From Mobula hypostoma (taxonomy: Eukaryota): 64,000 nucleotides of DNA. The position numbers and the translations under genes were made by a program. Below are positions 11,200 through 64,000 of this stretch, piece after piece. Location: positions 21,762,001 through 21,826,000 of the forward strand of contig NC_086106.1 in NCBI RefSeq assembly GCF_963921235.1, in the 5' to 3' direction. Each line of letters starts with the position of its first letter. Position 1 is the first letter of the stretch. Under the pieces are notes generated by a model. It had not been told where the DNA came from. It saw nothing but the letters and a program-made list of their open reading frames with translations, and did not search any database.

Positions 11200-11335
11200 N
11201 NNNNNNNNNNNNNNNNNNNNNNNNNNNNNNNNNNNNNNNNNNNNNNNNNNNNNNNNNNNNNNNNNNNNNNNNNNNNNNNNNNNNNNNNNNNNNNNNNNNN
11301 NNNNNNNNNNNNNNNNNNNNNNNNNNNNNNNNNNN
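11200..11335. other. Assembly gap (136 N)
   Basis: Direct reading. Confidence 1.
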
Positions 11336-15332: not shown

Positions 15333-15404
15333 GGGCACGGACGGGATTTGAACCCGCGATCTTCGGTTTACGAGACCGACGCCTTTCCACTTGGCCACCG
15401 CGCC
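15333..15404 (-). tRNA. TRT-CGT: tRNA-Thr, anticodon CGT
   Basis: Minus strand GGCGCGGTGGCCAAGTGGAAAGGCGTCGGTCTCGTAAACCGAAGATCGCGGGTTCAAATCCCGTCCGTGCCC, 72 nt; acceptor stem GGCGCGG/CCGTGCC; anticodon arm TCGGT-CT-CGT-AA-ACCGA; A and B boxes intact; near-identical to vertebrate Thr-CGT as recalled. Confidence 0.95.
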
Positions 15405-15687
15405 TCAGTAATTGATCATCTATTTAGAACTATAGCAGCATGATTAAAATCGTATACGCTTCATAATATCACGATCTCTGTTTCAGTGATATTGATGTGC
15501 AATTTTACGGTGATGTAACTTTGTAAGAATTGATGTATAGGTCTTCCTCTATGCTGGTTATGTCAGTGACAAATAAGTTTCAGTAATTAGTTGCTAAGTA
15601 TTAGTGGTTACCAGAGGTTTCTTAATTAAATCGAATATCGTTCTATCCATTGCACGACTTGCTGCCAATCCTAAATTACAACGAACA

Positions 15688-15784
15688 ACATACATCAAAG
15701 TTGCTGGTGAACGCAGCAGGCCAAGCAGCATCTATAGGAAGAGGCGCAGTCGACGTTTCGGGCCGAGACCCTTCGTCAGGACTA
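15688..15784 (-). mobile_element. 97-bp Penelope-derived mini-retroposon with 17-bp TSD
   Basis: Perfect direct repeat CTAAATTACAACGAACA at 15671-15687 and 15785-15801; body closely matches the 3' end (51284-51380) of the GIY-YIG-bearing copy. Confidence 0.88.
15748..15783 (-). ncRNA. Minimal type-I hammerhead ribozyme motif, core intact
   Basis: AGUC-CUGACGA-A-GGGU(CUCG)GCCC-GAAAC-GUC-GACU: helix I AGUC/GACU, CUGANGA and GAAA boxes, GUC triplet, palindromic ACGU helix III. Confidence 0.8.
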
Positions 15785-16734
15785 CTAAATTACAACGAAC
15801 AGTTCTCATGCGTAAGAAATTCTGAATCAGAACCACAGAAGAGGGGGCAGGCCAGTCCCTGACGGCATGAGTTTTATCGCGATCCATTATTTGGAAAAAT
15901 TAAAAAAAAAGATCAAAAAATGTACAACTTGAAGAAAATGAAATTCTCTGTTCTCTAGCTTGGTAAGTAATTTGTTATATAATAAACTATGAAGAACTTG
16001 ACGAACATGAAAAAAAAAATGTTACCAATAACAACTTTGGAAACAAACAAGAAAAAAAAAACGAGACATCGTCCAGATACCCGAAGACAGACCAGTTTAA
16101 CAACTCCATCAGTGCACCTTAATGAAGACCTAAACACCTGCTGGTGTGTTACTAGCAGGTGTTCATTATGCCTACTGGGGATATCGATGGTCGGGTTCTA
16201 TTCATCGGCATGGCGAATCAGACTTAAAGTGCCAGCAATTACTGTGATCTAATTTGCTGAAGGCAAAGTCTGAGACCATTAACTCAAAAGGGTATTTTTT
16301 TGTGGTCATTCTGGTAAACTTCAAATAATTAACACAGGTTCTCAGGCTCTCGTCCTTCGTCATAGAGCAAAATCCTGCTGCCACCGACTTTTTTGTATTA
16401 GTCGTACTAGTCAGGTTCAGGCATTGAGAACATTCAGCATCACAATGTCCAGTAGCGAGGCAATAATTTAATGGCGCAATCATAATTACGATGGATTGTC
16501 TGCGACGTGTTGTTTTTTTTTGCCATAAACTGCTAGAGATCTGAGTATTCAGGAAGGTTTCTCTCAATCTCATTCATAGCTTGTCAGAAAGGAAGGTCGG
16601 ACCCAGGTACACATATCTTTATTTTGATCTCGGCTGTCAAGAGAAATGCCTGCTAGTTCTGGGAAACCGATTAAAAACAGACATTCATGCAGTTTCACGA
16701 CCAACTAGAATTATCTTGCTGAAATGAGTCCATC

Positions 16735-17761: not shown

Positions 17762-18590
17762 TGGCGGAGAGAAGATGAGATGGGGCTAAACAGCGACTCT
17801 TTTGCTTGCATCTCCGGAAACAACTCTATTTCCATCTTTAATATGTTTATTTTTTCCCTATCAGGGTTTTGTTGAAGACCCTGGCTTGGAGTTGGACGCT
17901 GATCTATTCTCTTCGGGAATGGGAACCGTTCTCGGTGTGTGGTTGTTTTATGGCGCGCAAAGTTTTGTTCGGCTTGAGAGTCCGCCTTAAATTCCGAAGC
18001 CTACGATCTCTGTGTTTCGGATACGGGCGAACCGAGGATCAGTGCCATGGCAGGAGACAGGTGTGTCATCGGGGGAGTCGGGATATCTGCTGTGGGCCCG
18101 AAGACCTGGGATCTTCGCGATCTTCAGGGACATAGCTCGAAAAAAAGCGATTTAACGGAATTTCAACATCGTAAATCAGCGAATTGTTTATTATGCATTC
18201 CCGCTCGCTTGGGAGAAAACGGAGACAGCTCGTTAACCGTAATTAGGGAGATAAAGTATCTGCCGTATTTTCAATGCCCGCTGAGATGCAAAGACTTTGG
18301 GGTAATTTTAAGTCTGTGTCTTTGCTATTGTTTTTCTCATGCTGAGTGCTCGGTGGTGATACCCTTACAAGCTTTTTGCTGTTTGAGAGGTAGGGGGATT
18401 GTTGCTTGCTGTCGCTTAGGCGCAGGAGGGAGGGGAACTTAGAGGACGGTGTTTGGTGTTCTTGCGCATATCTGTCGTTCATTCTTCGGGGCACTCCTCT
18501 GTTTGCGTGGATGCTTGTGAAGAAAAAAACAATCATTTCGAAATGAAAATTGTGCACACTTTCTGACATTAAATTGGAACTTTGACCCTA
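17762..18590 (+). mobile_element. Putative non-autonomous retroposon with an L2/Rex-like 3' tail
   Basis: No coding signal; ends TTCTGACATTAAATTGGAACTTTGA, resembling Rex/L2-type tails; assignment from recall. Confidence 0.4.
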
Positions 18591-18699
18591 TGGATATCTT
18601 ATGATCTTCTCGACTTAAGTAATGCCGTACCTGTTTCACTGTAAATGGATTAGGTCACTCTGTACCTGCCTGGACTTTACTAGGGTCTATTTCAATACT

Positions 18700-20870
18700 T
18701 AATGGTGTAAGAGTCTCGCCCAAAAACGATACTTTATAATAACGGAACTGACATAAATATCTATATATATATTTTTTGTTTGTTTGTTTGTTTTTTCGGC
18801 CTTGGCGTACAGCATATTTTCAAGAAGCTGTCTGAGAACTCTCCGGACATGCTGGATGTGTTCACAATGAGAGCGCGAATAGATAAGGATTTTAGCTAAA
18901 TGCACAAACACTAACCAATTCTACATAACCCTGAGTGCAACGTTAAACGAACGGCATCTCCAGGTTCACTTTGCGGCCCTTAGAGGTGTTGAAAACTGAC
19001 CTCTAATTATCTTCCTTCCTTATGCGAGGTAGCCATGTTGTCAAGAGCCGATTATCAATGCCGGGACGGTACTTGACATCTTTTCTTCTCACAGAAAAGT
19101 AATCCTGCGCCTGTCGGAGATATTGGCGGAAGATAAACTCCATGGCCAATGTCTCCATGGCCACCGTTTCAGGACAAGAGAGCGAAAACTGCCGATCCCG
19201 GGGAGGACTACTGCCAAGTAGTACTTTTTATGGCACAACGGCATCCCCTGTATGAGGTCAGCATTCTGGTCTTTATTTAACTTAAGTCCTCAAGGGGATC
19301 TGCATATTCAACCGGAATCCGGATCAGGTCTACATCGTTAGATGATGCAGGAGAGGATTCATGGAGCCCAGCTGAACAGGTAGACAGGCAGACAAACATG
19401 CCGGTCCCCGCTTTTGGAGTGCTTTTAGAGAGCAATACATCTGTGGCTTATGTCGGGAAAATCAGGGGAGGCCAGGTACATGTTCAGCCGAATAAACTAG
19501 ATCCAAAGAGAGTTCTACATCATAGTTGCCTTCGAGGGGTTGTTTGGAAAGAAATCGACAGTCAAGCGGCTTGACTTTGCTCCTTTCTTTCGTTTCCTGT
19601 TTCGTAATTCCACATGAATGAGCTAGAGAGATGTTCATGAAATACCCAGGGGCACTGGAGTTTATATAAGCCTTAAGTTCATTGATCTTATACCTCCACT
19701 ACAGGGAAGTTGGGAGCATTAAATATTTCGTGAAAACTGGCTGAAGAAAGAAACGACCGGTCAGGAACTTTCTCCCTGCTAACGGGTATACTACATCGCC
19801 ACAACAGAGGCAGTAACATCTCCCCGGCGCCGTTTTTGTTGCTCCCGAGACAGACGCTTGAGCACCACTTATATAGCCTCCTCCCGGTGCTCATGTGCGG
19901 GTTGGTGATGGGTAGGAGAGAGGGAGTGGAATAACGGTGATCATAAAAAGCTTGAAACATTATTTTTCTGTGTCACTCTGCTGACGGTCCTCAACCATTA
20001 TTATTCCATTATTAGAGAAGGCAGTAATTAAAGATCTCTTATTCCAAACGTCTTTACTACAGGCGTCCGGAATTCGACTATATTGCCGTTTCTCCAGCTT
20101 GGCATGGGTCCATATGTCGGTGGGCAGCCTGCTTACCCCTTACTGCAAACTCAAAGCCATCCTTAACACTTTCACGGCATCTCTGAACGACTGGACAGTG
20201 CGATAACCTTGCTCCTGTAAAGCGTTGAAGAGGATGAGTGGTAATCTATCCAGAAGTTTTACCATGGCTGACAGTGTTCGTGAATCATTACCAAAACGAT
20301 CAGGTTGGGTTTGAGTTTTCTGTTCGCCTGGGATATGAACATTTCTGCAACCACATATATCACCAGAATATCAGCCTTGTGGTGCTATACTCATTTCCTG
20401 TTCGTAATCTGGAGTCCCTGGCGGACCGAAAGCGGCAATCTGTTGTTGCCCGGGTGTGGTAGAAGGAACAGGAGCATTAGTAGCTGATAGTAGTGCTGGG
20501 AGTCAGACGGGGGCGGCAGAGGTTGCTGTGCTGAGCAAGAGAGCAACCCACAGACACACGAGTCCGGTTGGCTGCCGTGAGCTGTGCAACAGTTGCAGCG
20601 AGGGATAATACCAGTTCCTTCAGACAAAATTCGTTAGCACAAGATTATCTGACTCATTGCTTCCATAACTTCAGTCAGAACAGAATCCAGTGCCTGCAGA
20701 TTGTCCCGAACCTCTCCAATGAATCTTAGGAAACAAGAAAGCTGTTCTTTCGCTCTACTGGGTCGATAGTTCACAGACTTTATTGCGAACAGATATGGGG
20801 GGGGGGGAACAAACAAACATTAGGAGCTTGCTGAAGCAGGACCGTTAAATTAAACTATGCAGTGGAAAAC
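18700..20870 (-). mobile_element. Ty3/Gypsy gag-pol remnant
   Basis: [31 protein letters not shown] (cf. FVYLDDILIFS..HVRQVLQRLLEN); RPGIDNR and EMPF upstream in RT; gag-like region 20000-20500. Confidence 0.8.
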
Positions 20871-24441: not shown

Positions 24442-24552
24442 TGTCACCTGTTAGTTATGTAAGAGCTTTCCAATCCTCTCATTCCCACTATTTTCTTGCA
24501 ATATTACATGGCCCCGCTTTTTCGTTTATCAAAAACAGTATAAAGTCTGTGT

Positions 24553-24760
24553 ATGCTGGAAATCCAAGCAACACATACACAAAATGCTGGCGGAATCTAG
24601 GAGTCCAGGCAGTATATATGAGAAATAGTAAACAGTCGCCGTGTCGTGCTGAGACCCTTCGTCAGGACTGGGAAAACAGATTAGACGCCAGTGGAATACG
24701 TGTGGGGATGAGAGTGGTGGGAAAAGTGGGAGGTGATAAGTGAAACTGGGAGAGGGGGAA
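24553..24760 (-). mobile_element. Penelope-type 3' end with inactivated hammerhead motif (24633-24670)
   Basis: Minus strand CAGTC-CTGACGA-AGGGTCTCAGCAC-GACA-C-GGC-GACTG: helix I and CUGANGA kept, GAAA and GUC mutated. Confidence 0.75.
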
Positions 24761-24947: not shown

Positions 24948-25810
24948 CAGTGACATGCAAGTGTGAGCACTGCTGGTGATAATTTCTATAACTGTGAATA
25001 GCTAAGCGAGTAAAAGATGAACTAATTTCCAAAAGGCTTAAAGTTAAACATGACACAATTATATAATATTTAGCAAGAAAACCTTTTTTTTTTATTTCCA
25101 TGTTTTACTGTTTCAAAATAAGAAAAAAACAAAAATGATAAGCGCCTGAAGCAAAAGTGTGGGCACCCTGCATGGCCAGTACTTAGTAACAACCACTTTG
25201 TAAGTGTTACAGCATGTAAACGCTCATTGTTGCCAGATAAGAGTCTTTCAGTTTTTGTTTTAGGGATTTTCGGCCATTCTTCCTTGCAAAAGGCTTCTAG
25301 TTCTCTGAGATTCTTGGGCCGCCTTGTATGCACTGCTCTTTTGAGGTCTATCCACAGTCCAATGACTATCCACAGTCAAGGGACTGTGAGGGCCACTTCA
25401 AAACCTTCATCCTGCACCTCTTGAGGTAGTCCATTGTGGATTTTGAGGTATGTTTAGGTTCATATCCTGTTGTAGAAGCCACCCTCTTTTCAGTTTTGGC
25501 TTTTTAAAAGACGGTGTGATGTTTGCTTCCAGAATTTGCTGGCTTTTAATTGAATTCATTCTTCCCTCTACAAGTAAATGTTCCCCATGCCACTGGCTGC
25601 AACAGAAACCCAAAGTTTGATCGCTCCACCTCGTGCTTAACAGTTGGAGAGGGGTTCTTTTCATGAAATTCTGCACTCTCTTTTCTCCAAACGTAACTTC
25701 GCTCATTGGGGTCAAAAATTTCTATTCAAAAGGTTCAAAGGAAAATCTAAACAAACCTGATGCACTTTGTAAGCAGGTCCTATGGACTGATGAAGTTAAA
25801 ATAGAACTGG
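24948..25810 (-). mobile_element. Tc1/mariner DNA transposon remnant (transposase C-terminal half and one IR/DR end)
   Basis: TA-CAGTG end at 24946-24952, inner repeat AAAAGTGTGGGCACC ~25152; VEGRMNSIKSQQILEAN, WLLQQD, RRPKNLRELEAFCKEEW, VLWTDEVKIEL. Confidence 0.9.
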
Positions 25811-37049: not shown

Positions 37050-38890
37050 GCAATATTGAAATAAACTAGACAAGTAATATTGCAGAATTTAATCTATGTT
37101 TCTCAGGATTTAAGAATTTTAAACGAAAGGCGAGAATGGATACTGGGCCGATGGAAAACGATGTGAGATATGTTGTAATGGGTTACAGTGACATGGCGAG
37201 CGAACTGAATAAATCGTTTGCAGCAGTCTATACGCAGAAGGTACGAGCAGTATGTTGGACTTTTTTGCTCTCAGTGGTCATGAGCTGTGTGAGGCTACCA
37301 TTACCTGAGATGGAATTTGGGGAACTGAAATGTCTAATGGTACGTGTCACCGGACCAAATTCTGTGCACACAAGGGTTATGAAAAAAAAATAAATAAAAA
37401 AAACATCTCTTAAGATATTGTTTCGGCATTGGCAATGATATTTCACGAATCACTAGGCTCTGGAAAGTTCTGGAAGACGGTGATATAGCAAATATCACCG
37501 CGGTCCTCAGGGATGGAGATAGGGAAAACGAAAGGAAACAATAGGACAGTTTATTTGATCTCAGCTCGGACCTTTTGAAGAAGATGTTGCAGAAGATTAT
37601 TAAGGATGTGATCTAAAGATTTTTTCAGGCACTTGAATAAGTAGGCCTTAGTCATTTTGCCTGACAAATATGGCTTTACAAGCTAGGAGCGCAAGTTATT
37701 TCGGAATATTCTGCGATGCAAAAACACAATAGGAAATAAGCAGAAGGCAAAGAGTCGGAATAAGTGGAGCCTTTTCTGGGTGATGATTGTCACTTACTGT
37801 GGTGTTTCTCAGGGTCTGTGTTGGGCCCTTTCTTTTTACTTTGTATGCCAATGAATTAGATGACAAATTTGAGGGATTTCTTACAAAAATTACAGACGAC
37901 TAGAAGAAATGCGAAGGGCAGTTATATTTGAGAAGGAATTGGACATATATGCAGAAAGGACAACATATGCAAATAGAAACCATTGTGGGGATGAGTACGA
38001 TAATGCAATTTGTTAGAAGAAATGAAAGGTTTGACTGTTTTTAAAATGTAAAAAAATAGAAATCCTGAGCCACAAATAGATTTGACAGTTCATGTACAGC
38101 TTACCTTCAGGTTAATTTTGAGGTTGAGTCTGTGGTGAGGAAGGCAATTGTGATGCTGGCATTCATTTCAACAGGGCTGAAATAGGAAGGCAAGCATCGA
38201 ATGTTGAGAAACACAAGAAAATCTGCAGATGCTGGAAACCAAAGCAGCACACACAAAATATTTGGCGAACTAAGCGGGTCAGGCAGCAACTTTGAAAAAA
38301 AAAAAAATATATATAGCAGTTTCTGGCAGGAGGAGTGGTCTCAGCCCGAAACGTCGAAAGTATTTTTTTTTCAAAGTTGGCCCCTAGCTTACTACGATCA
38401 TCCAGCATTTTGAATGTGCTGTATGTTATGCTGAGAATTAACAAAGCACTGCTTTGGCCTCAAATGGAACACCGTGAGATGTTGTGGACCCCTCACCTGG
38501 AGGGATCTCGCATGTATTCAAAAACATTATGAAGAATGAGGTGTGGCATTGCAATTTATCGACGGGTAATAGAATGAATATTGAGAGGACGTATCCAATG
38601 GTGGGAAAGTATAAAATGGGAGGATAGAGCCTACAAATAGATTGAGGAAATGATGAGATATCTCTTTATCCACAGAGTGCTAAGTCTGAAGAATTGTTTC
38701 CCACAGGCAGTTGTGAGGCCAGGTTTTCATGTGCATTGAAGACAGAGGTTGACATATTTCTGTCTGTTTGGGGAGTGAAGGGATGCAGAGAGCAAGCAAC
38801 AGATTAGCGCTTAGGGGAAAAATAGTTAAACGATGATGAAATGAAAGGCCAGACTCCAAGAGCCAAATAGCCATACTGTCCTGATAATCG
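37050..38890 (+). mobile_element. Highly decayed CR1 ORF2 3' portion, interrupted at 38200-38420
   Basis: MASELNKSFAAVYT, QGLCWALSF-type DNA at 37810-37860, C-terminal motifs and 3'UTR to ~38890. Confidence 0.7.
38200..38420. mobile_element. Inverted (head-to-head) dimer of the Penelope-type terminal repeat
   Basis: Left arm antisense, right arm sense; 17-bp inverted repeat CAACTTTGAAAAAAAAA / TTTTTTTTTCAAAGTTG; hammerhead 3' half GGTCTCAGCCC-GAAAC-GTC-GA at ~38337-38357. Confidence 0.7.
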
Positions 38891-42803: not shown

Positions 42804-43650
42804 ATGTCTAAGAATGGAAAAAAAACGGGAAGGACGGCAAACCTCTGGTTAGACCGAAAGGTACCGATTTTCCTCCAACTGAACCACCGCTGACTTTGAA
42901 AGCTATATCGGAGCTAATTCAAAGGGAAATTTTAACCTCTGTTACGGAGCTGATTCGTGCGGAAATTTCAATTAATTTCCAGAAATTGCAGATTCAATCG
43001 ATAAGATACAAACATCTATTACGGAACATCAGTCGGCTGTATCTGATCTTCAAAAATCCACGCAACAAAGTGAGCTCAAGATGAAGAAAATCGAAGAAAC
43101 AATTAATGTAATGAAGAAGAAACTTGACTTTCTGACCTTTAAAAACTCTGACTTAGAATCCAGAATGCGACGGCAGAATCTTCGAATGATTGGGGTGCGT
43201 AAAGCTGTTGAATCTGATAACCCTATGAAGTATTTTTCTCAACTTTTAAAAGATACATTTCCTACTGTATTTCCTTACCAACCACCGTTATTGGATCGTG
43301 CTCACAGAGTTCCATCATACTCGTCTGAGTCAGATAAATCTCGACATGTTATATTACGTTTTCATTACTTTCAAGATAAGGAGAAACTCTTTCGTTTCGT
43401 TCGAACTAAAGGTTACATTGATTTTTTGGATCTTAAGTTCCGATTCGTGGAGGATTTTAGTAAACCAATTCGGGATCAACGGGTTCGTTACAGATCTGTG
43501 ATGTCGGAACTCTACAAGATGGATTTAAAACCAACGCTGCTTTACCCTGCACGTCTAAGGATTCGTACGTCGGATGGAGCTCTCCGTTATTTTGAATCTC
43601 CATCGGATGCCCAGAGCTATCTGGATCAATTTTCACCTTCAACATCTTAA
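42804..43650 (+). pseudogene. L1 ORF1p (coiled coil, RRM, CTD), frameshifted
   Basis: DLESRMRRQNLRMIGV, LDRAHRV, ILRFHYFQDKE, LLYPARLRI. Confidence 0.88.
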
Positions 43651-44359
43651 TCGTAATTTTTAACTATCTCCGTTTGATCGGAGGTTGTGAATGTGTCTGT
43701 TTTATATATTTTTTTGCCTTATATGGACAGAAAAGTTTATTTTTGATTAATTAATATGGTTGCTAAACTTTCTTTCTATCTGCGTCATACCTTTCTTTTT
43801 CCCAGGGGGTTCTGGGTGGTTATTCCCTCACCGTCATTCTACTTAGTTCCTTTGAGGCCTTAAATTTTGTAGTTTTTAAAACTACTTCTTTTTGTAGGTT
43901 TTCATAACTAGTTTATGTTAATAATCTCATTTCATTTTTTGGTTACTCATAGGGTCTGGGGTTTGTTGCGTTTTTTTTATATTTTCAGGCTTTTTCTCTG
44001 TTATATTAAGTGTTTGTTTTAATTGATTTACCTTTTTTTTAATTTTTTTACTGTTTTATAACTAGTTGATCTTTTTTATATTTACACTTTTTTTAGGGAG
44101 CGTATACCGGAAGTCATGGGGGTAGTTTTAGTGCTTGCTTCTTTCTGGCTGGTCTGTGTTAGATTTAGCCTTGGCGCATGGGGTGGGTGGTGGTGGGAGG
44201 GACTTCACGTTTTAGTTTCTTTCTTCTTGGGCTATGTACACTATTGAGGTATTGGTTGCGTTCTCCTTCCCGGTATCTCTTATTTGTTCTCTTCCCTTTC
44301 CGGGTTCATGGGTCGAGCCTATCGTCAATCCTCCTTGTTGCGGGTTGACTTTAGGGTTT

Positions 44360-47300
44360 ATGGAGTCTATTATTAATTTTGTCTCCTGGAATACTAATGG
44401 TCTTAATCATCCTATTAAAAGGGAAAAAAAAAAAGTTTTTAAAGTGTTCCGGAGACTTAAAGCACAAATTTAATTTTTACAAGAGACCCATGTGCGGAGG
44501 GGGGACAGACTACGTTTTTTTTTTTAATTCTGGAAGGGTAAACTGTTTCATTCGAACTCCAACGCTAGGATTCGAGGCGTCTCTATTTTTATAGACTCCT
44601 CAGTTACTTTTATATAACATGATATTATTTCTGATCCGAATGGTAGATTTCTACTGGTTAGTGGTCTACTATTTAATAAAAAGGTAGTTTTGGTTAATGT
44701 TTATGCTCCTAATATGGACTGTCCGGAATTTTATAAATCATTATTTAATCAGTTCCCGAATTTGAATGAGTTTTCATTGATCTGGGGCGGAGATCTTAAT
44801 ACCTGTTTATCTCCAGCTTTGGACCGTTCGGCTCCTCTACGGACCTTACCTAATAAATCTGCAACTTTGATTAATTCATTCCTCTCTGATTCTGGGTCGA
44901 CGGACATTTGGCGTTCTTTGCCTCCTCAAGAAAAATATTTTTATTTGTTTTCACATGTTCACCATTACTATTCAAGAATTGATTATTTCTTTATTGACTC
45001 TCGTCTTATTTCTTCAGTGATTATATGTGATTATGACTCTATAACCATTTCGGATCATGCTCCACTTAAGCTTTCTATTAAAATTCAGGCCTATACACAA
45101 AATAAAAAACAATGCTGTTTTAATTCGCTGTTGCTTCAGGACTCAGACTTTGTTAACTTTATGAATGTACAGATTGATCTTTTTTTTTTACAATCAACTA
45201 TACAGAGGATATTTCTGTGAACATTCTTTGGGATACTTTTAAAGCTTATATTCGTGGTCAGATTATCTCGTATTCTGCTGCTTTGAGGAAGAAGCTGAAG
45301 CAGGAGGAGTTGGCACTTGTGGACAAGTTTAAGGAAATTGATAAGAAATATGTTACAGCTCCCTCTGAGGAGTTATATAAACAAAGAACTGAACTTGAAA
45401 TGGAACACAGTGTATTACTTTCGTCCTCGATTGTAAACCAATTAAATAAAACAAGAAGTGAATTTTATGTACACAGTGACAAAATTCGCAAACTGCTGGC
45501 TAATCAATTGAAGTCTAATTATGCTAAATCTCAAATTAATCAGATTTATAACCAAAATGACCGACTGATACTTGATCATGCGGGGATTAATCAAACCTTC
45601 TGTGATTTTTATTCTTCCTTATATCAATCAGAGTCTCCTCGAGACTCTAAATATATTAATGAATTTTTAGATAACCTAGATTTCCCTGAGATTTCACAGG
45701 ATATGTCTTCTATGTTAGACACTCCCATTACCACTGATGAGATTAAGAATGTTATTTCCTCTATGAACTTGGGGAAAGCTCCTGGCCCTGATGGATTTAC
45801 CGTAGAATTTTATAAATGTTTTGCACCTTCATTAATCCCTTGGTTCTGTAGGGTTTTTGAGGCTCCATTAAAACTTGGTAAACTTCCCGAACAGATTTTT
45901 CTAATCTGACAAACAGATTAGAAAAAGTACTTCCTTTTATTATTTCGGAAGACCAAACGGATTTTATTAAAGGTCGTTACTCTTTTTATAACATTCGCAC
46001 ACTGTTAAGTATTGTTTATTCCCATTCACAAAATGTTCCTGAATGTGTTATCTCTTTAGATGCTGAGAAAGCTTTTGATAGAGTAGAATGGCCTTACTTA
46101 TTTAAGGTGCTTGAAATGTTTTATTTTAGCTCGAAATTTATATCCTGGACCAAACTGTTATATCATTCTCCCGTAGCCTCCGTCCGTACTAACTCTCTAA
46201 GCTCACCTTTTTTCACCCTTTTTCGAGGTACTCGACAAGGTTGTCCTCTTCGTCCTTTATTATTTGATATTGCATTAGAACCTGTTGCAATTGCCATTCG
46301 AGAATCTCCAAATATTACTGGGATAACTCGGGGCTTAAAGTCCCATAAAATATCACTCTATGCTGATGACTTACTTTTATATATTTCTAATCCTCAAAAA
46401 TCCATCCCTGCTGTTTTAGAGTTATTAGCACAATTTAGTCTCTTTTCAGGTTATAAATTAAGTCTTAGTAAGAGTGAACTTTTCCCGATTAATAAACAAC
46501 TTCCCTTATATCATAACTTTCCATTTAATTTGATTATTAATTATTTTTCATATCTTGGGATTAAAATTACTTGTAAATACAAAGATTTATTTAAGATTAA
46601 CTTCTTACCCTTAATTGACCATATTATTCAACTTTCATCTAAATGGTTTCCTTTATATTTAACTTTGATTGGTCGTATTAATGCAGTTAAGATGTTTTTT
46701 TTTTTGCCAAAATTTCTATATATATTTCAGGCATTACCAATCTTTGTCCCAAAATCTTTTTTTTAATAAAGTTGACTCAAAAATCTCTTCATTTGTTTGG
46801 CAAAATAAAAACCCGAGGCTGGGTAAAATACATTTACAGAAAGCTAAGAGTGATGGAGGTTTAGCATTACCTAACTTTAGGTTTTATTATTGGGCAATTA
46901 ATATTCGACATATGAAATTTTGGTTACTTGACCAGGATATACTATCTATTCCTAAATGGGTAGCATTGGAGTTACAATCTGTTCAGGGATATACACTTGG
47001 CTCTATTTTAGGTTCCTCTCTTCCTTTTGATTTGAAACGCGTCAAACAGGTATCTAACCCAATAGTTAAATATACCTTACGTATTTGGTTTCAATGCGGA
47101 ATTTTTTTTGATCTTAACCAATTTGGGCTAGCGATTCCTATTTTAGGTAATATATATTTTCCTCCCTCTTTTACGGATCGTGTTTTTCAAATTTGGAAGA
47201 CTAAGGGTGTTTCACAGTTTTTTGGATTTATTTTTAAATGGTTCCCTTATGTCTTTTGAACAATTATCTAATAAATATAATTTATCAAGAACACATTTTT

Positions 47301-48050
47301 TTTTAGATATCTACAAGTTAGAAATTTCCTAAGTACTATACTTTCTTCTTTTCCTATGCTTCCTCCTACATACATTTTAGATACTATAATTAACCTTAAT
47401 CCATGTCAGAAAGGTGCATCGGCTATGATTTATAATATTATTATGAAACTGAGGAAAGCTCCATTTGATAAGATTAGGGTAGATTGGGAACAGGAATCGG
47501 GGTCTATCATTTCCGTGGATGACTGGGGGAAGATTTTACAATTAGTCAATACTTCCTCTATATGTGTTAAACATTCCCTAATTCAATTTAATGTTGTTCA
47601 TAGAGCACATATGTCCAAAGATAAATTAGCTCGCTTTTATTCTCATATTAATCCTTTTTGTGATCGATGTCCGGGGCAGATAGCCTCTTTAACTCATATG
47701 TTTTGGTCCTGTCCTACTCTGGAAACTTTTTGGAGAGACATTTTTAATATTATCTTCAAGGTATTGAATATAGATATCTCTCCTCACCCTATTACTGCTA
47801 TCTTCGGACTACCTCCAATTTCCAGTAATTTTTCTCCTTCAGCCCGTAGAATGATTGCAGTTCTTACTTTAATGGCGAAAAGACCTATCTTACAACATTG
47901 GAAAGAGCTTAATGTTCCAACTACCTTTTTTTGGTTTTCTCAGACGGTATTATGCTTGAATTTGGAGAAAATTAGAAGCAAACTTTATGATTCTTCACTT
48001 AAATTTGAAAAGACCTGGAGATCTTTTATTCAATATTTTCATTTAATGTA
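44360..48050 (+). pseudogene. L1 ORF2p (APE endonuclease, RT, Cys-rich C-terminus), frameshifts, stops and an internal deletion
   Basis: SWNTNGLN, NVYAPN, GGDLN, SRIDYF, SDHAP, KAPGPDGF, RGTRQGCPL, LYADD, YLGI, CDRC..HMFWSC. Confidence 0.92.
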
Positions 48051-48764
48051 TTTTTTTTTCTCCTCTTGTTTTTGCTCCATATTTATATACCCTTCTTGTG
48101 TTTTTTTTTTTCTGTTTTTAATGGAGGTCGGGATTGAGGACGTGATTTTAAGTTTTTTTTTTTTTTTTTAACTCTGCTTGGTTCCAAGTCAGCCCATTGC
48201 TTTGCTTTGCTCCCAGTTAGTTGCACGGTGATTTTTTTTTTTTTGGGGGGGGTTCTTTTTATATATATAATTAGTATACTATGGGATGTTACTTTAGTAT
48301 GTTATGTTTAAATTACATTGTTTGTATCTTTTTTTTTGTATTACTATCTCCTGTAATTTTATTATATTTTAACAGTGTATTAGTGCTTATCTGGCTTACC
48401 TTTTTGTATACTTATTCAATAAAAAAGATTTAAAAAGAAAGAAAGGTGTAGAGTCCCGGCCCTACGTCCTGTTCCGAAGGAGGGCTCTGTCTTCCATGTT
48501 CCCGACTCTTCTAGTCCAAGGCTCCGTGCTCCTGAAGGCCCTTGTTCAGTCCGTGCCAAGTCCAATCCTAACCGAGTCATGTCCATGTTACTTTACCTGT
48601 CCTTCTGTCTCGCTATACCCAGGAGTTCCTCACCTAAGCCATGTCCAGTCCTGTAGCCTCGTCTTGTCTTTAGCTAGTTCTGTATTCCGAACCCAAGTCA
48701 AGTCTCAGGTTTTGAGTCCTGGCCCAGTCTCTGGTTCAGAATCCATACCCAGGCCTCGAAGGAC

Positions 48765-49025
48765 CCTAGACCCAAGCCTCAAGACCCCAAGCCTGTATCC
48801 AAGCCTCAAGTCTCAAGAGCTTAAGCCTGTCTCCAAGCCTCAAGCCTCTAGACCCCAAGCCTGTCTCCAAGCCTCAAGCCTCTAGACCCCAAGCCTGTCT
48901 CCAAGCCTCAAGCCTCAAGACCCCTAGCCTCTCTCCAAGCCTCAAGCCTCAAGACCCCTAGCCTGTCTCCAAGCCTCAAGTCTCAAGACCCCTAGCCTGT
49001 CTCCAAGCCTCAAGCCTCAAGACCA
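48765..49025 (+). repeat. 34-bp minisatellite (CCAAGCCTCAAGCCTCTAGACCCCAAGCCTGTCT), about 7 units
   Basis: Unit starts at 48833, 48867, 48901; related array at 31880-32124. Confidence 0.9.
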
Positions 49026-49429
49026 CAACCTCCAGTTCTGCAGTCATGACTTGCCTTTGCCTGCATCTGGGACCCGAGCCTGCAGCAAGACACACGTTCT
49101 GTGTGCTTGTCCAGTCTCAAGCTCGGGGTTCATACCCAGGCTCCTAGTTCATACTTTTTTCGCCGAGTTTCCTGTGTAGTCCATGTCCTAGCCAAAGTCT
49201 GCGGTCCTGTCCCTGCTCCGTGTCTACATCCTGTCACGCCCCTACTCTAGTTAAGTCCTGTTTCTTGTGCTTCAGTCTTTGTGTGTTGAATTTGGGTCCG
49301 CTACCAGCGGTCTATTTGTGACAATAGATACATTACTTGAACCGAGGCAGGTTAAAGTGTATAAACACAGGATCGAAAGCAGTACATGGACCCATCTGTT
49401 AATATGAATACGATAGTCAGACATAAGTC

Positions 49430-50330: not shown

Positions 50331-50784
50331 TCAAACGTGCTTGATCCTTTGAAATACCATCTCAGCTGGCCTTTCTCAAATTTAGAATCTCGATATGCGG
50401 CCCAGACATATATATATATATATATATTTTCCCGCTGCTGCCGTGCCTCAGAACGGAGCGATGTCCACGTAGAACAGAGAGAAGTAGGATTTTCTTCATC
50501 AAAGTGGAGGGGATTCTGTTGAATTCAGTGCTAAAAGATTGCTGCGGAAGCGAAGTGACACAATACATTTAAGTGGTGCTTGATGTGTTTTAGATTAGTT
50601 AGGGCGGCAAGTTTAAGGGAAAAAAAGACAGTGGTATGGGGTTTTAAGGGTTAATAAATCAGCTCTGATAGAATTGAAGGGAAGAATCGATGAGACGCAT
50701 GATCTTATTCTGCTCCAATGTTTTACAGTCATATGATTTAATTGCTGGAGCATTCGTAAGGGCCACAGAATTCCCAAGACCAAC

Positions 50785-51380
50785 ATCGTCCGCCAGAATA
50801 GGCAGGATCCTCCAGTGCCACACATTATAATTCTACGTCCCATTCCCATTAGGATATCACTGTCCTGGACCTCCTCTACTGTACAGATGATGCCACACTC
50901 AGGTTAGAGCAACAGCACCTTATATTCCGTCTGGGTAGCCTCCAACCTGATGGCATGAACACTGACTTCTCAAACTTCCACTAATGCCCCACCTCCCCCT
51001 CGTACCACATCCGTTATGTATTTATATACATACATTATTTTTCTCTCTCCCCTTTTTCTCCTTCTGCCCCCCTCACTTTACTCCTTGCCCATCCTCTGGT
51101 TCTTTCCACCCTCCCCCTTTTCTTTCTCCCAAGGCCTCCTGTCCATGATCCTATCATATCCCTTTTTTCAATCAACTGTCCAGCTCTTGGCTCCATCCTT
51201 CCTCCTCCTGTCTTCTCCTATCATTTTAGATCTCCTTCTTTCCCTCCTACTTTCAAATCTCTTACTAGCTCTTTTTTTCAGTTAGTCTTGACGAAGGGTC
51301 TCGGCCCGAAAAGTCGACGGTACCTCTTTCTAGAGATGCTGCCTGGCCTGCTGCGTTCACCAGCAACTTTTATGTGTGAT
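50785..51380 (+). mobile_element. Penelope-like element 3' end (GIY-YIG C-terminus, pyrimidine-rich UTR, hammerhead-bearing tail)
   Basis: DITVLDLLYCTDDATLRLEQQHLIFRLGSLQPDGMNTDFSNF resembles the vertebrate PLE endonuclease C-terminus. Confidence 0.82.
51284..51318 (+). ncRNA. Minimal hammerhead motif with two substitutions
   Basis: AGTC-TTGACGA-AGGGTCTCGGCCC-GAAAA-GTC-GAC; C3 to U and C15.2 to A relative to 15748-15783. Confidence 0.6.
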
Positions 51381-51399
51381 GCTTACTATGTCATTCTTT

Positions 51400-52360
51400 A
51401 GAATGTGAAATAAATCAACATTCCCGACGAAAACGAAGTGGCCACGTGGAGAACGTACAAGATCAGAACAGGCGACATCGAGAATGGACCCCCTAACGTA
51501 GAATTATCGCTTTAATGGGTTCTGCTAACTTGTGCGGTCCCATGTCATTGCAGCAGATTGAACGTTGTGTCACCTGATGTGCTATTATGCAATATCAGCA
51601 TAATAGGCCAGCTTTAATTGAAACTATACTAAGAAACACGAAATCGGCACGGAAGAGTGAGAAAAGAACTAGCATTATATCGCTCAGCTATTGTCCGGTT
51701 ATCATCATTTTGCCATGCAACTTTTGTCATGCGTATGGAATTCATTAATATATATATATATGAATATATACACCATTCCCGTCTACGTGCCTTTTCTATG
51801 CATATGTTGAGCATTTTCTTTTCACGAATTATGAACAAATGTCCGACACTACAGAATAGCTCAAGTCTGCGCTACACTGCAGAATTTGCACACTAAAAAT
51901 ACCACCTTGATTCAGTTGGTTGCAAGTGGTAGATTGCAATATTTGTAAATATTGATGTGAGTGCAGAAGCTAATTATAATCATTCAAATGCGAACTTTCT
52001 GGTTAGTTGTTGGAAAATTTTAGTCAGGTTATTAATGTGCTTATATCTGTGGTGATGACAGATGGACTCGAGCTAACGCTGATATAAATAATCTCAGAAA
52101 TGTAAGTCCCAGATTAAAATGCAGAGCGCCTAAACGGAACACATTTGTCCCCACCAACGCATAAAATATTTTCAGCAAGTGAGATGCAAATATTCAAAGG
52201 ATCCATCAGTAATGGTTAATCTATCAGGTATCCTTCTGTCAGCTGGAGGATGTTAAAACAGAGATATTATTCAGGATCATTCTGGGTCTTTTTTTTTCAT
52301 CGTAATCGCAGGGAATTGGAACATACCGATTACGGGTCCAGTGCAATTGCTGTAATCTAT
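51400..52360 (+). repeat. Old duplicated non-coding module, copy 1
   Basis: Colinear blocks shared with 57630-59270, e.g. TATCCTTCTGTCAGCTG (52229-52245), CCCCACCAACGCA, ATGCAAAT (52184-52191). Confidence 0.75.
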
Positions 52361-62465: not shown

Positions 62466-64000
62466 AATATAGAAGTAGAAACATAGAAAATAGGTGCAGG
62501 AGTAGGCCATTCGGCCCTTCGAGCCTGCACCGCCATTTATTATGATCATGGCTGATCATCCAACTCAGAACCCCGCCCCAGCCTTCCCTCCATACCCCCC
62601 GATCCCGGTAGCCACAAGGGCCATATCTAACTCCCTCTTAAATATAGCCAATGAACTGGCCTCAACTGTTTCCTGCGGCAGAGAATTCCACAGATTCACC
62701 ACTCTCTGTGTGAAGAAGTTTTTCCTAATCTCAGTCCTAAAAGGCTTCCCCTTTATCCTCAAACTGTGACCCTTTGTTCTCGACTTTCCCAACATCGGGA
62801 ACAATCTTCCTGCATCTAGTCTGTCCAATCCCTTTAGGATTTTATACGTTTCAATCAGATCCCCCCTCAATCTTCTAAATTCCAACGAGTACAAGCCCAG
62901 TTCATCCAGTCTTTCTTCATATGAAAGTCCTGCCATCCCAGGAATCAATCAGGTCAACCTTCTTTGTACTCCCTCTATGGCAAGGATGTCTTTCCTCAGA
63001 TTAGAGGACCAAAACTGCACACAATACTCCAGGTGTGGTCTCACCAAGGCCTTGTACAACTGCAGTAGTACCTCCCTGCTCCTGTACTCGAACCCTCTCG
63101 CTATAAATGCCAGCATACCATTCGCCTTCTTCACCGCCTGCTGTACCTGCATGCTCACTTTCAATGACTGGTGTATAATTACACGCAGGTCTCGTTGCAC
63201 CTCCCCTTTTCCTAATCGGCCACCATGCAGATAATAATCTGCTTTCGTATTTTTGCCACCAAAGTGGATAACTTCACATTTATCCACATTAAATTGCATC
63301 TGCCATGAATTTGCCCACTCACCCAACCTATCCAATTCACTCTGCATCCTCTTAGCATCCTCCTCACAGCTAACACTGCCACCCAGCTTCGTGGCATCCG
63401 CAAACTTGGAGATGCTGCATTTAATTCCCTCATCCAAGTCATTAATATATATTGAAAACAAATGGGGTCCCAGCACTGAGCCTTGTGGTACCCCACTAGT
63501 CACCGCCTGCCATTATGAAAAGGTCCCGTTTATTCCTACTCCTTGCTTCCTGTCTGCTAACCAATTCTCCATCCACATCAATGCCATACCCCCAATACCG
63601 TGTGCTTTAAGTTTGCACACTAATCTCCTGTGTGGGAACTTGTCAAAAGCCTTTTGAAAATCCAAATATACCACATCCACTGGTTATCTCCTATCCACTC
63701 TACGAGTTACATCCTCAAAAAATTCTATGAGATTCGTCAGACATGATTTTCCTTTCACAAATCCATGCTGACTTTGTCCGATGATTTCAACGCTTTCCAA
63801 ATTTGCTGTTATCACATCATTGATAACTGACTCCAGCAGTTTCTCCACCACCGACGTTAGGCTAACCGGTCTATAATTCCCCGGTTTCTCTCTCCCTCCT
63901 TTTTTAAACAGTGGGGTTACACTAGCCACCCTCCAATCCTCAGGAACTAGTCCAGAATCTAACGAGTTTTGAAAAGTTATCACTAATGCATCCATTATTT
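62466..64000 (-). mobile_element. CR1 LINE ORF2 RT and 3'UTR, among the youngest copies, runs off the window
   Basis: [57 protein letters not shown]; in-frame TGA at 62949-62951; TTTCTATG tail. Confidence 0.95.

Follow-up and report, generated by a model that had tools for sequence, protein, structure and literature searches.

The minus strand of a 64-kb stretch of ray DNA, hereafter the window, carries a minimal type-I hammerhead motif in which the conserved core and two helices are intact and the third helix is replaced by a short palindrome. The motif lies at the 5' end of a 97-nt insert that is flanked by a perfect target-site duplication and belongs to a very abundant family of dispersed repeats. 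We consider it probable that the motif is a genuine minimal hammerhead (min-HHR) of the type found in Penelope-like elements (PLEs), and that the insert is a retroposed copy of the module at the 3' end of either a PLE or a non-autonomous derivative dependent on PLEs. A motif of this kind in a dispersed repeat had been proposed in a first-pass annotation of the DNA, and the hallmarks published for PLE min-HHRs are all found in it. The motif class is already known from PLEs; notable here are the copy number and the clean mini-unit.

Sequence and fold of the motif

Read 5' to 3', the minus strand is gu-AGUC CUGACGA A GGGU CUCG GCCC GAAA CG UC GACU-gc. The parts of the motif, in Hertel numbering, occupy the following positions.

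15746-15785, minus strand: the whole minimal type-I hammerhead motif, read directly from the letters and the sole descriptor match in the window
15780-15785, minus strand: helix I, 5' strand
15773-15779, minus strand: CUGACGA box, C3 to A9 (C3 at 15779, G8 at 15774, A9 at 15773)
15772, minus strand: bulged extra A between A9 and G10.1
15760-15771, minus strand: helix II with its CUCG loop (G10.1 at 15771, C11.1 at 15760)
15756-15759, minus strand: GAAA (G12 to A14 at 15759-15757, A15.1 at 15756)
15753-15756, minus strand: palindrome ACGU in place of helix III (C15.2 at 15755, G16.2 at 15754, U16.1 at 15753)
15752 and 15751, minus strand: C17 and G1.1, with the predicted cut between them
15746-15751, minus strand: helix I, 3' strand

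All 13 conserved core nucleotides are present and in register with helices I and II: the boxes C3-U4-G5-A6-N7-G8-A9 and G12-A13-A14, and H17, which is C and not G. Helix I (AGUC/GACU) has 4 bp and is extendable to 6 through a U.G and a G-C pair; since the outermost G (15785) is part of the target-site duplication beside the insert, 5 bp of helix I belong to the family itself. Helix II consists of 4 bp with a tetraloop and has G10.1-C11.1 as its closing pair. The earlier reading of a minus-strand hammerhead with boxes, helices and GUC triplet in register was confirmed in every letter and position; its coordinates for the predicted cut agree with ours, and its loopless helix III, the palindrome ACGU, is there in the sequence. 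The extra A that it had remarked on is likewise present. However, this nucleotide is no oddity, since it is a conserved defining trait of PLE min-HHRs.

With a loopless ACGU, a single molecule of the motif does not contain three helices, and the A15.1-U16.1 pair is possible only between two molecules. The predicted minimum free energy structure of the monomer is a rod of -15.9 kcal/mol that pairs GACG (G5-G8) with CGUC (C15.2-C17), compared with -11.9 kcal/mol for the hammerhead fold. For two copies, a plain extended duplex is predicted at -40.1 versus -22.7 for a double hammerhead, the latter value being that of the domain-swapped dimer, as the classical double hammerhead with both helices I in cis is pseudoknotted for RNAcofold. 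The 4-bp ACGU contact is weak.

We assessed the rarity of the motif with a min-HHR descriptor based on the description in PMC4209133 (Cervera & De la Pena 2014). In order, it demands a helix I with no fewer than 4 bp, CUGANGA, 0-1 bulged nucleotides, a G-C-closed helix II whose length is 4-8 bp, GAAA, a 15.2/16.2 pair, U and H. The descriptor matches once in the window and not at all in 600 dinucleotide-preserving shuffles (76.6 Mb, both strands). The expectation based on composition is ~8e-11 per position, corresponding to ~1e-5 per window and ~0.6 per 3.5-Gb genome, and a particular 100-nt consensus would contain the full descriptor with a chance of ~1e-8. A looser pattern, CTGANGA...CGAAAC, occurs in 10 of 100 shuffles and is therefore not rare; the significance of the match comes from the helices and their register.

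The search with Rfam hammerhead models that the first-pass annotation had proposed as a check found no match: Rfam 15 reports no hammerhead at the gathering score in the whole window, nor at E<=10 in 15650-15850 or in 50500-51420, the region of a second copy. We attribute this silence to the curated models, which expect a helix III hairpin that is absent here. The lesson for annotation is that Rfam-based screens miss the whole min-HHR class.

The 97-nt insert and its relatives in the window

The motif takes up the 5' third of the insert and is followed by a pyrimidine-rich linker and a 3' tail. A search with blastn and nhmmer recovered four more copies in the window, giving a total of five in 64 kb. 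The insert, its duplications and the other copies are located as follows.

15688-15784, minus strand: 97-nt retroposed insert in its short-tail form, delimited by the perfect duplication on both sides and by the edges of the contig pile-up
15671-15687: target-site duplication, 3'-side copy, 17 bp, CTAAATTACAACGAACA on the plus strand
15785-15801: target-site duplication, 5'-side copy, 17 bp, identical to the other copy
24545-24668, minus strand: older long-tail copy, its hammerhead broken by A13->C, U16.1->G and one helix II mismatch
38211-38427: inverted head-to-head pair of copies, with a candidate 10-bp duplication ATGYTGAGAA at 38201-38210 and 38428-38437
~38211-38301, minus strand: left arm of the pair, 5'-truncated, without the hammerhead and with a 34-nt tail extension
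~38322-38427, plus strand: right arm of the pair, with a decayed hammerhead (CUGANGA box rewritten) and a short tail
51284-51383, plus strand: second copy, 89% identical, its hammerhead mutated by C3->U and C15.2->A

The edges of the 15.7 kb insert are sharp in the public data: the pile-up of contigs ends at 15686 on one side and at 15782-15784 on the other. One contig of run X1 spans 15758-15900 with 0 mismatches, showing that the insert junction is no assembly artefact; among the contigs listed for the related species, none bridges it. The core is intact in one of the five window copies, that at 15.7 kb, which is solitary: it lacks a partner in cis, and the closest other copy, a decayed one, lies at a distance of 9 kb. 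The insert offers a clean and datable example of an intact core inside a perfect 17-bp duplication.

The inverted pair at 38.2-38.4 kb gives the orientation of the unit. Its minus-strand arm lacks the motif and retains the tail, which identifies the tail as the 3' end and the hammerhead strand as the sense strand of the element. A variant linker is common to both arms, and the candidate duplication around the pair (ATGTTGAGAA/ATGCTGAGAA) is 10 bp long with 1 mismatch (p ~0.03). The 51.3 kb copy runs on upstream into family sequence that recurs as a loose-end consensus of many other copies. Duplications of 8 bp around the 24.6 kb and 51.3 kb copies were considered and rejected as not significant; that at 51.3 kb is also contradicted by the family sequence continuing upstream.

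Two short reading frames run through copies of the unit. On the minus strand of 15688-15784, a short frame (MLPGLL...) begins with an AUG ~25 nt past the predicted cut and reads through the tail, and at 51288-51398 on the plus strand a frame of 37 codons passes through the motif and tail of the 51.3 kb copy. By analogy with the anole PLE described below, the short frame might be the start of the source element's ORF. The 37-aa ORF has no matches in a HMMER search against 1.84 billion protein representatives.

Several other features are found in the window. An intact tRNA-Thr gene (anticodon CGT; 15333-15404, minus strand; 67.5 bits in Rfam and confirmed by ARAGORN) is located ~280 nt downstream of the 97-nt unit and shares its strand. 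ORF pieces at 25070-25715 on the minus strand, which lie upstream of the 24.6 kb copy, resemble, in translation and by eye, the C-terminal part of a Tc1/mariner transposase. A peptide at 18400-18900 on the minus strand resembles the post-YxDD region of an LTR-retrotransposon reverse transcriptase in its regex context.

Copy number, conservation and ends of the family

To describe the family beyond the window, we used a pile-up of public contigs on 15600-15900 at 80% likeness, drawn from two DNA runs of two related species and two probable RNA runs. Contigs restricted to 15686-15784 number 45,671 in run X1 and 25,843 in run X5. Summed word depth on the unit is ~1e7 versus ~11-40 on the unique flanks, a depth that is not itself a copy number. 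Together with the density in the window (5 in 64 kb), this depth points to approximately 10^5-10^6 copies in the ray genome and in a related one. Exact 31-mers of the unit are also present in runs under two further organism labels.

The motif is more conserved than the rest of the unit. In the pile-up, variants of at least 5% within the motif are limited to C>T/G>A changes at the CpGs C15.2/G16.2 and C17/G1.1, at 6-9% each, and none is seen in CUGACGA, the bulged A, helix II or GAAA, whereas variant sites in the linker and tail reach 10%, 26%, 38%, 65% and 71%. Among the diverged copies of the window, the motif is 68-92% identical compared with 53-88% for the linker and tail, and is the higher of the two in 6/6 pairs. 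The motif is also common to subfamilies with differing linkers and differing upstream sequence, as seen in the loose-end consensuses. The first-pass annotation had held that core boxes no more conserved than the flanking repeat would speak against a ribozyme; the core proved the more conserved in both comparisons, of which the pile-up is anchored on the 15.7 kb copy, and a young family may be uniform for reasons besides selection. Compensatory changes in helices I and II were not seen in this family, which is too uniform for them, nor among the four window copies, which are too few. The sole helix position to vary by at least 5% is G1.1, an uncompensated instance of CpG decay.

The ends of the copies fall into discrete classes. 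At the 3' side, the pile-up resolves a short and a long class, ending ~64 and ~98 nt past the predicted cut. At the 5' side, a class of copies begins exactly at the 5' edge of helix I, including the 15.7 kb copy with its perfect duplication, and the sequence upstream of the loose-end classes at 15782-15784 is near-random. A start at the helix I edge is predicted neither by random 5' truncation nor by cleavage at the ribozyme site.

A few contigs contain direct motif-to-motif tandems (spacer of 1-4 nt, period of ~38 nt) and head-to-tail joints of whole units; each of these joints has a depth of 15-67, corresponding to roughly 1-6 loci. Rare as they are, the tandem joints are the arrangement that dimeric cleavage would need. 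In the motif region, 15740-15783, the unit is also joined to an inverted copy of itself in some contigs, and one such RNA-type contig from the second species reaches a depth of 1673. Fold-back and tandem forms of the module therefore exist elsewhere in these genomes.

Relation to Penelope-like elements and alternative readings

Cervera & De la Pena 2014 (PMC4209133) define the min-HHR of PLEs as a hammerhead without helix III, and describe traits that emerged beyond those of their own descriptor: an unpaired nucleotide between A9 and 10.1, the G10.1-C11.1 pair, palindromic 15.2-16.2 and a large consensus family. All four are present in the ray. Like metazoan PLE min-HHRs in general, the ray motif is of type I and has a short open helix I, and its copies are mostly solitary and dispersed, with some pairs on opposite strands. 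The ray motif differs in its 4-bp helix II, where the families of Schistosoma and Drosophila typically have 6-8 bp, in a separate class of copies whose start coincides with the 5' edge of helix I, and in a copy number apparently 10-100 times the largest in PMC4209133 (~9,000, Xenopus tropicalis), i.e. a suggested excess of 1-2 orders of magnitude over published counts. If this is so, the ray genome would be well suited to studying the purpose of these weak ribozymes, which depend on dimers.

The mode of insertion points to the same elements. PLE insertions are described by Craig et al. 2021 (PMC8557442) as strongly 5'-truncated, with partial tandems or an abutting inverted 5'-truncated copy, with a tail of 30-40 bp that is frequently present at one end only and with the HHR near the 3' end. 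The window copies display this architecture in their 5' truncation, their inverted pair, the 34-nt extension of one arm and duplications of 17 bp and, as a candidate, 10 bp, and for this reason the repeat is not the ordinary-looking one that the first-pass annotation had described. Pfam searches of 30 ORFs (100 aa or longer) and a GIY-YIG regex run in six frames detected no reverse transcriptase (RT) or GIY-YIG ORF beside any of the five window copies; the RTs that Pfam does find in the window are of the L1 and CR1 types. With no coding partner in the window, the link of the ray module to an RT/GIY-YIG element is drawn from the insertion signatures, in which respect it differs from metazoan PLE min-HHRs. 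The exact motif pattern has no matches in metagenome and viral contigs, and full-text literature searches for strings of the repeat return unrelated primer matches only. PLEs have been reported as expanded in the introns of the whale shark, and the present motif would add cartilaginous fishes to the hosts of PLE-type minimal hammerheads.

A close parallel with biochemical data is PAc, a PLE of the Poseidon type from the anole Anolis carolinensis (Frangieh et al. 2024, PMC11167929). Its reverse transcription begins internally, at either of two sites, and the sequence between these sites makes up the tail. In PAc, as in our reading of the ray module, the HHR is near the junction of terminal repeat and ORF. 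The two RT starts are 30-40 nt apart, ~60-90 nt past the cut, and produce copies with or without the tail; they lie 111-118 nt into the ORF with the cut site at +26, and the distances from motif to 3' end in the ray (~64 and ~98 nt) resemble this arrangement. The ORF start of PAc overlaps the HHR, whereas in the ray N7 is C, so that the core contains no AUG and the first one follows ~25 nt downstream of the cut. The ray element is known here from sequence alone.

The published PLE model, applied to the ray, would begin with multimeric source transcripts in which two motifs pair through ACGU and thereby build the missing helix III. Each paired motif would then cut, weakly, after GUC (C17). The element's RT would start internally, at ~64 nt past the cut for the short form and ~98 nt for the long one, and a staggered cut by the endonuclease would leave a duplication of 10-17 bp. 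Dimer cleavage of min-HHRs is reported by Lunse et al. 2017, as cited in PMC6765202. Short, abundant, non-coding repeats that carry a hammerhead with a helix III too short for the monomer are also known, namely newt satellite 2 with its dimeric type-I hammerheads and the SINE-like Sm-alpha elements of Schistosoma; however, these have a helix III of 1-2 bp with a loop, contacts between loops 1 and 2 and fast cleavage, and the ray motif has neither such a helix III nor such contacts.

The copies themselves indicate what becomes of the motif during insertion. Retroposed copies retain 32 nt of sequence preceding the cut site, and the best-supported loose ends include no class at 15751/15752. The RNA templates were therefore uncleaved at the motif. 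This agrees with the anole work, where catalytic mutants of the HHR insert normally in vitro and no RNA-seq ends are found at the cut site (PMC11167929), and with the very low rates of PLE min-HHRs in vitro (PMC4209133). Copies that keep the pre-cut sequence provide genomic evidence, independent of the anole in vitro work, for uncleaved RNA as the usual template. The first-pass annotation had read the repeat as a self-cleaving module that is active only when two copies pair; the missing partner in cis, the predicted rod and the uncleaved templates leave such activity unsupported for the 15.7 kb copy, which is most likely an inert passenger.

Uncleaved templates also fit a reading in which the motif is a hammerhead-derived RNA shape and not a catalyst: its 40 nt would fold into a 14-bp imperfect hairpin serving template recognition by the RT, stability or priming, and cleavage would have no role in the life cycle. 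We regard this as rather unlikely. The predicted rod is 4 kcal/mol better than the hammerhead fold, the normal insertion of the anole mutants and the lack of RNA-seq ends at the anole cut site agree with dispensable cleavage, and PLE clades without HHRs proliferate well (PMC8557442). However, C3, U4, A9, the bulged A and G12-A15.1, all unpaired in such a hairpin, should vary, and none does so at 5% or above, although the youth of the family could also explain this. An anole template truncated to +20, with most of the HHR gone, still inserts, which makes the motif dispensable for recognition by the RT in that element (PMC11167929), and PLE clades ranging from protists to vertebrates retain the hammerhead core exactly (PMC4209133).

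It is quite improbable, in our judgement, that the hammerhead and tail, 97-131 nt long, constitute a mini-retroposon in its own right, discrete and self-sufficient, with the ribozyme fold itself determining where the 5' end falls. If they did, no smaller PLE parasite would be known, and with 10^5-10^6 copies no hammerhead family of any genome would come near it in size. Pairs of copies in sense orientation within introns, including the rare motif-to-motif tandems, would then cut host pre-mRNAs.

Propagation as a non-LTR retrozyme is very unlikely. The 90-97-nt unit (lengths approximate) would in this case multiply as self-cleaving tandem arrays giving small circular RNAs, with the dispersed copies as dead offspring. 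Animal non-LTR retrozymes (Cervera & De la Pena 2020, PMC7229834; Li et al. 2026) are likewise non-autonomous, HHR-bearing and probably PLE-derived; the preprint of Li et al. 2026 argues for their descent from PLE terminal repeats and reports them from a chondrichthyan, and the few head-to-tail unit joints and ~38-nt-period motif joints in the DNA contigs would suit such a cycle. Retrozymes are defined, however, by tandem arrays and circular RNAs, whereas the ray family consists overwhelmingly of dispersed single copies with target-site duplications: the joints account for roughly 1-6 loci each against 1e5-1e6 dispersed copies, these copies are not circularly permuted at the cut site, and the motif lacks the loop-loop contacts of canonical type-I retrozyme hammerheads.

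A chance look-alike is equally remote. The repeat would then belong to an ordinary LINE/SINE pair as its 3' tail, with CUGANGA and GAAA standing by accident on either side of a GC-rich tail hairpin. Such an origin would accommodate the absence of a PLE ORF from the window, the silence of Rfam and the SINE-like character of the unit (short, very abundant, one 3' module behind varied 5' continuations), but the full descriptor has a chance of only ~1e-8 per 100-nt consensus and no occurrence in shuffles, the module bears no relation to the tails of the two LINEs compared, those of the window (CR1 at 62.2-62.6 kb, L1 at ~48.2 kb), no tRNA-like head precedes the longer copy at 51.3 kb, and three features are specific to PLEs, namely the inverted pair, the tail extension of 34 nt on one arm and the bulged nucleotide.

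The L1-type LINE of the window extends over 43081-48171 on the plus strand. Its ORF1 encodes an L1 RBD-like domain, and pieces of RT and zf-RVT come after ORF1 in broken frames. The tail of this LINE (near 48.1-48.4 kb) is T/A-rich and shows no relation to the hammerhead module. Just downstream of this element, at 48773-49028, is a 34-bp minisatellite of 7.5 copies with 91% matches. A run of 136 Ns, an assembly gap or masked sequence, occupies 11200-11335. The CR1-type LINE RT, with a typical C-terminal domain, is encoded on the minus strand at 62565-63995 and runs off the end of the window; its 3' UTR (~62480-62565) is also unrelated to the hammerhead module.
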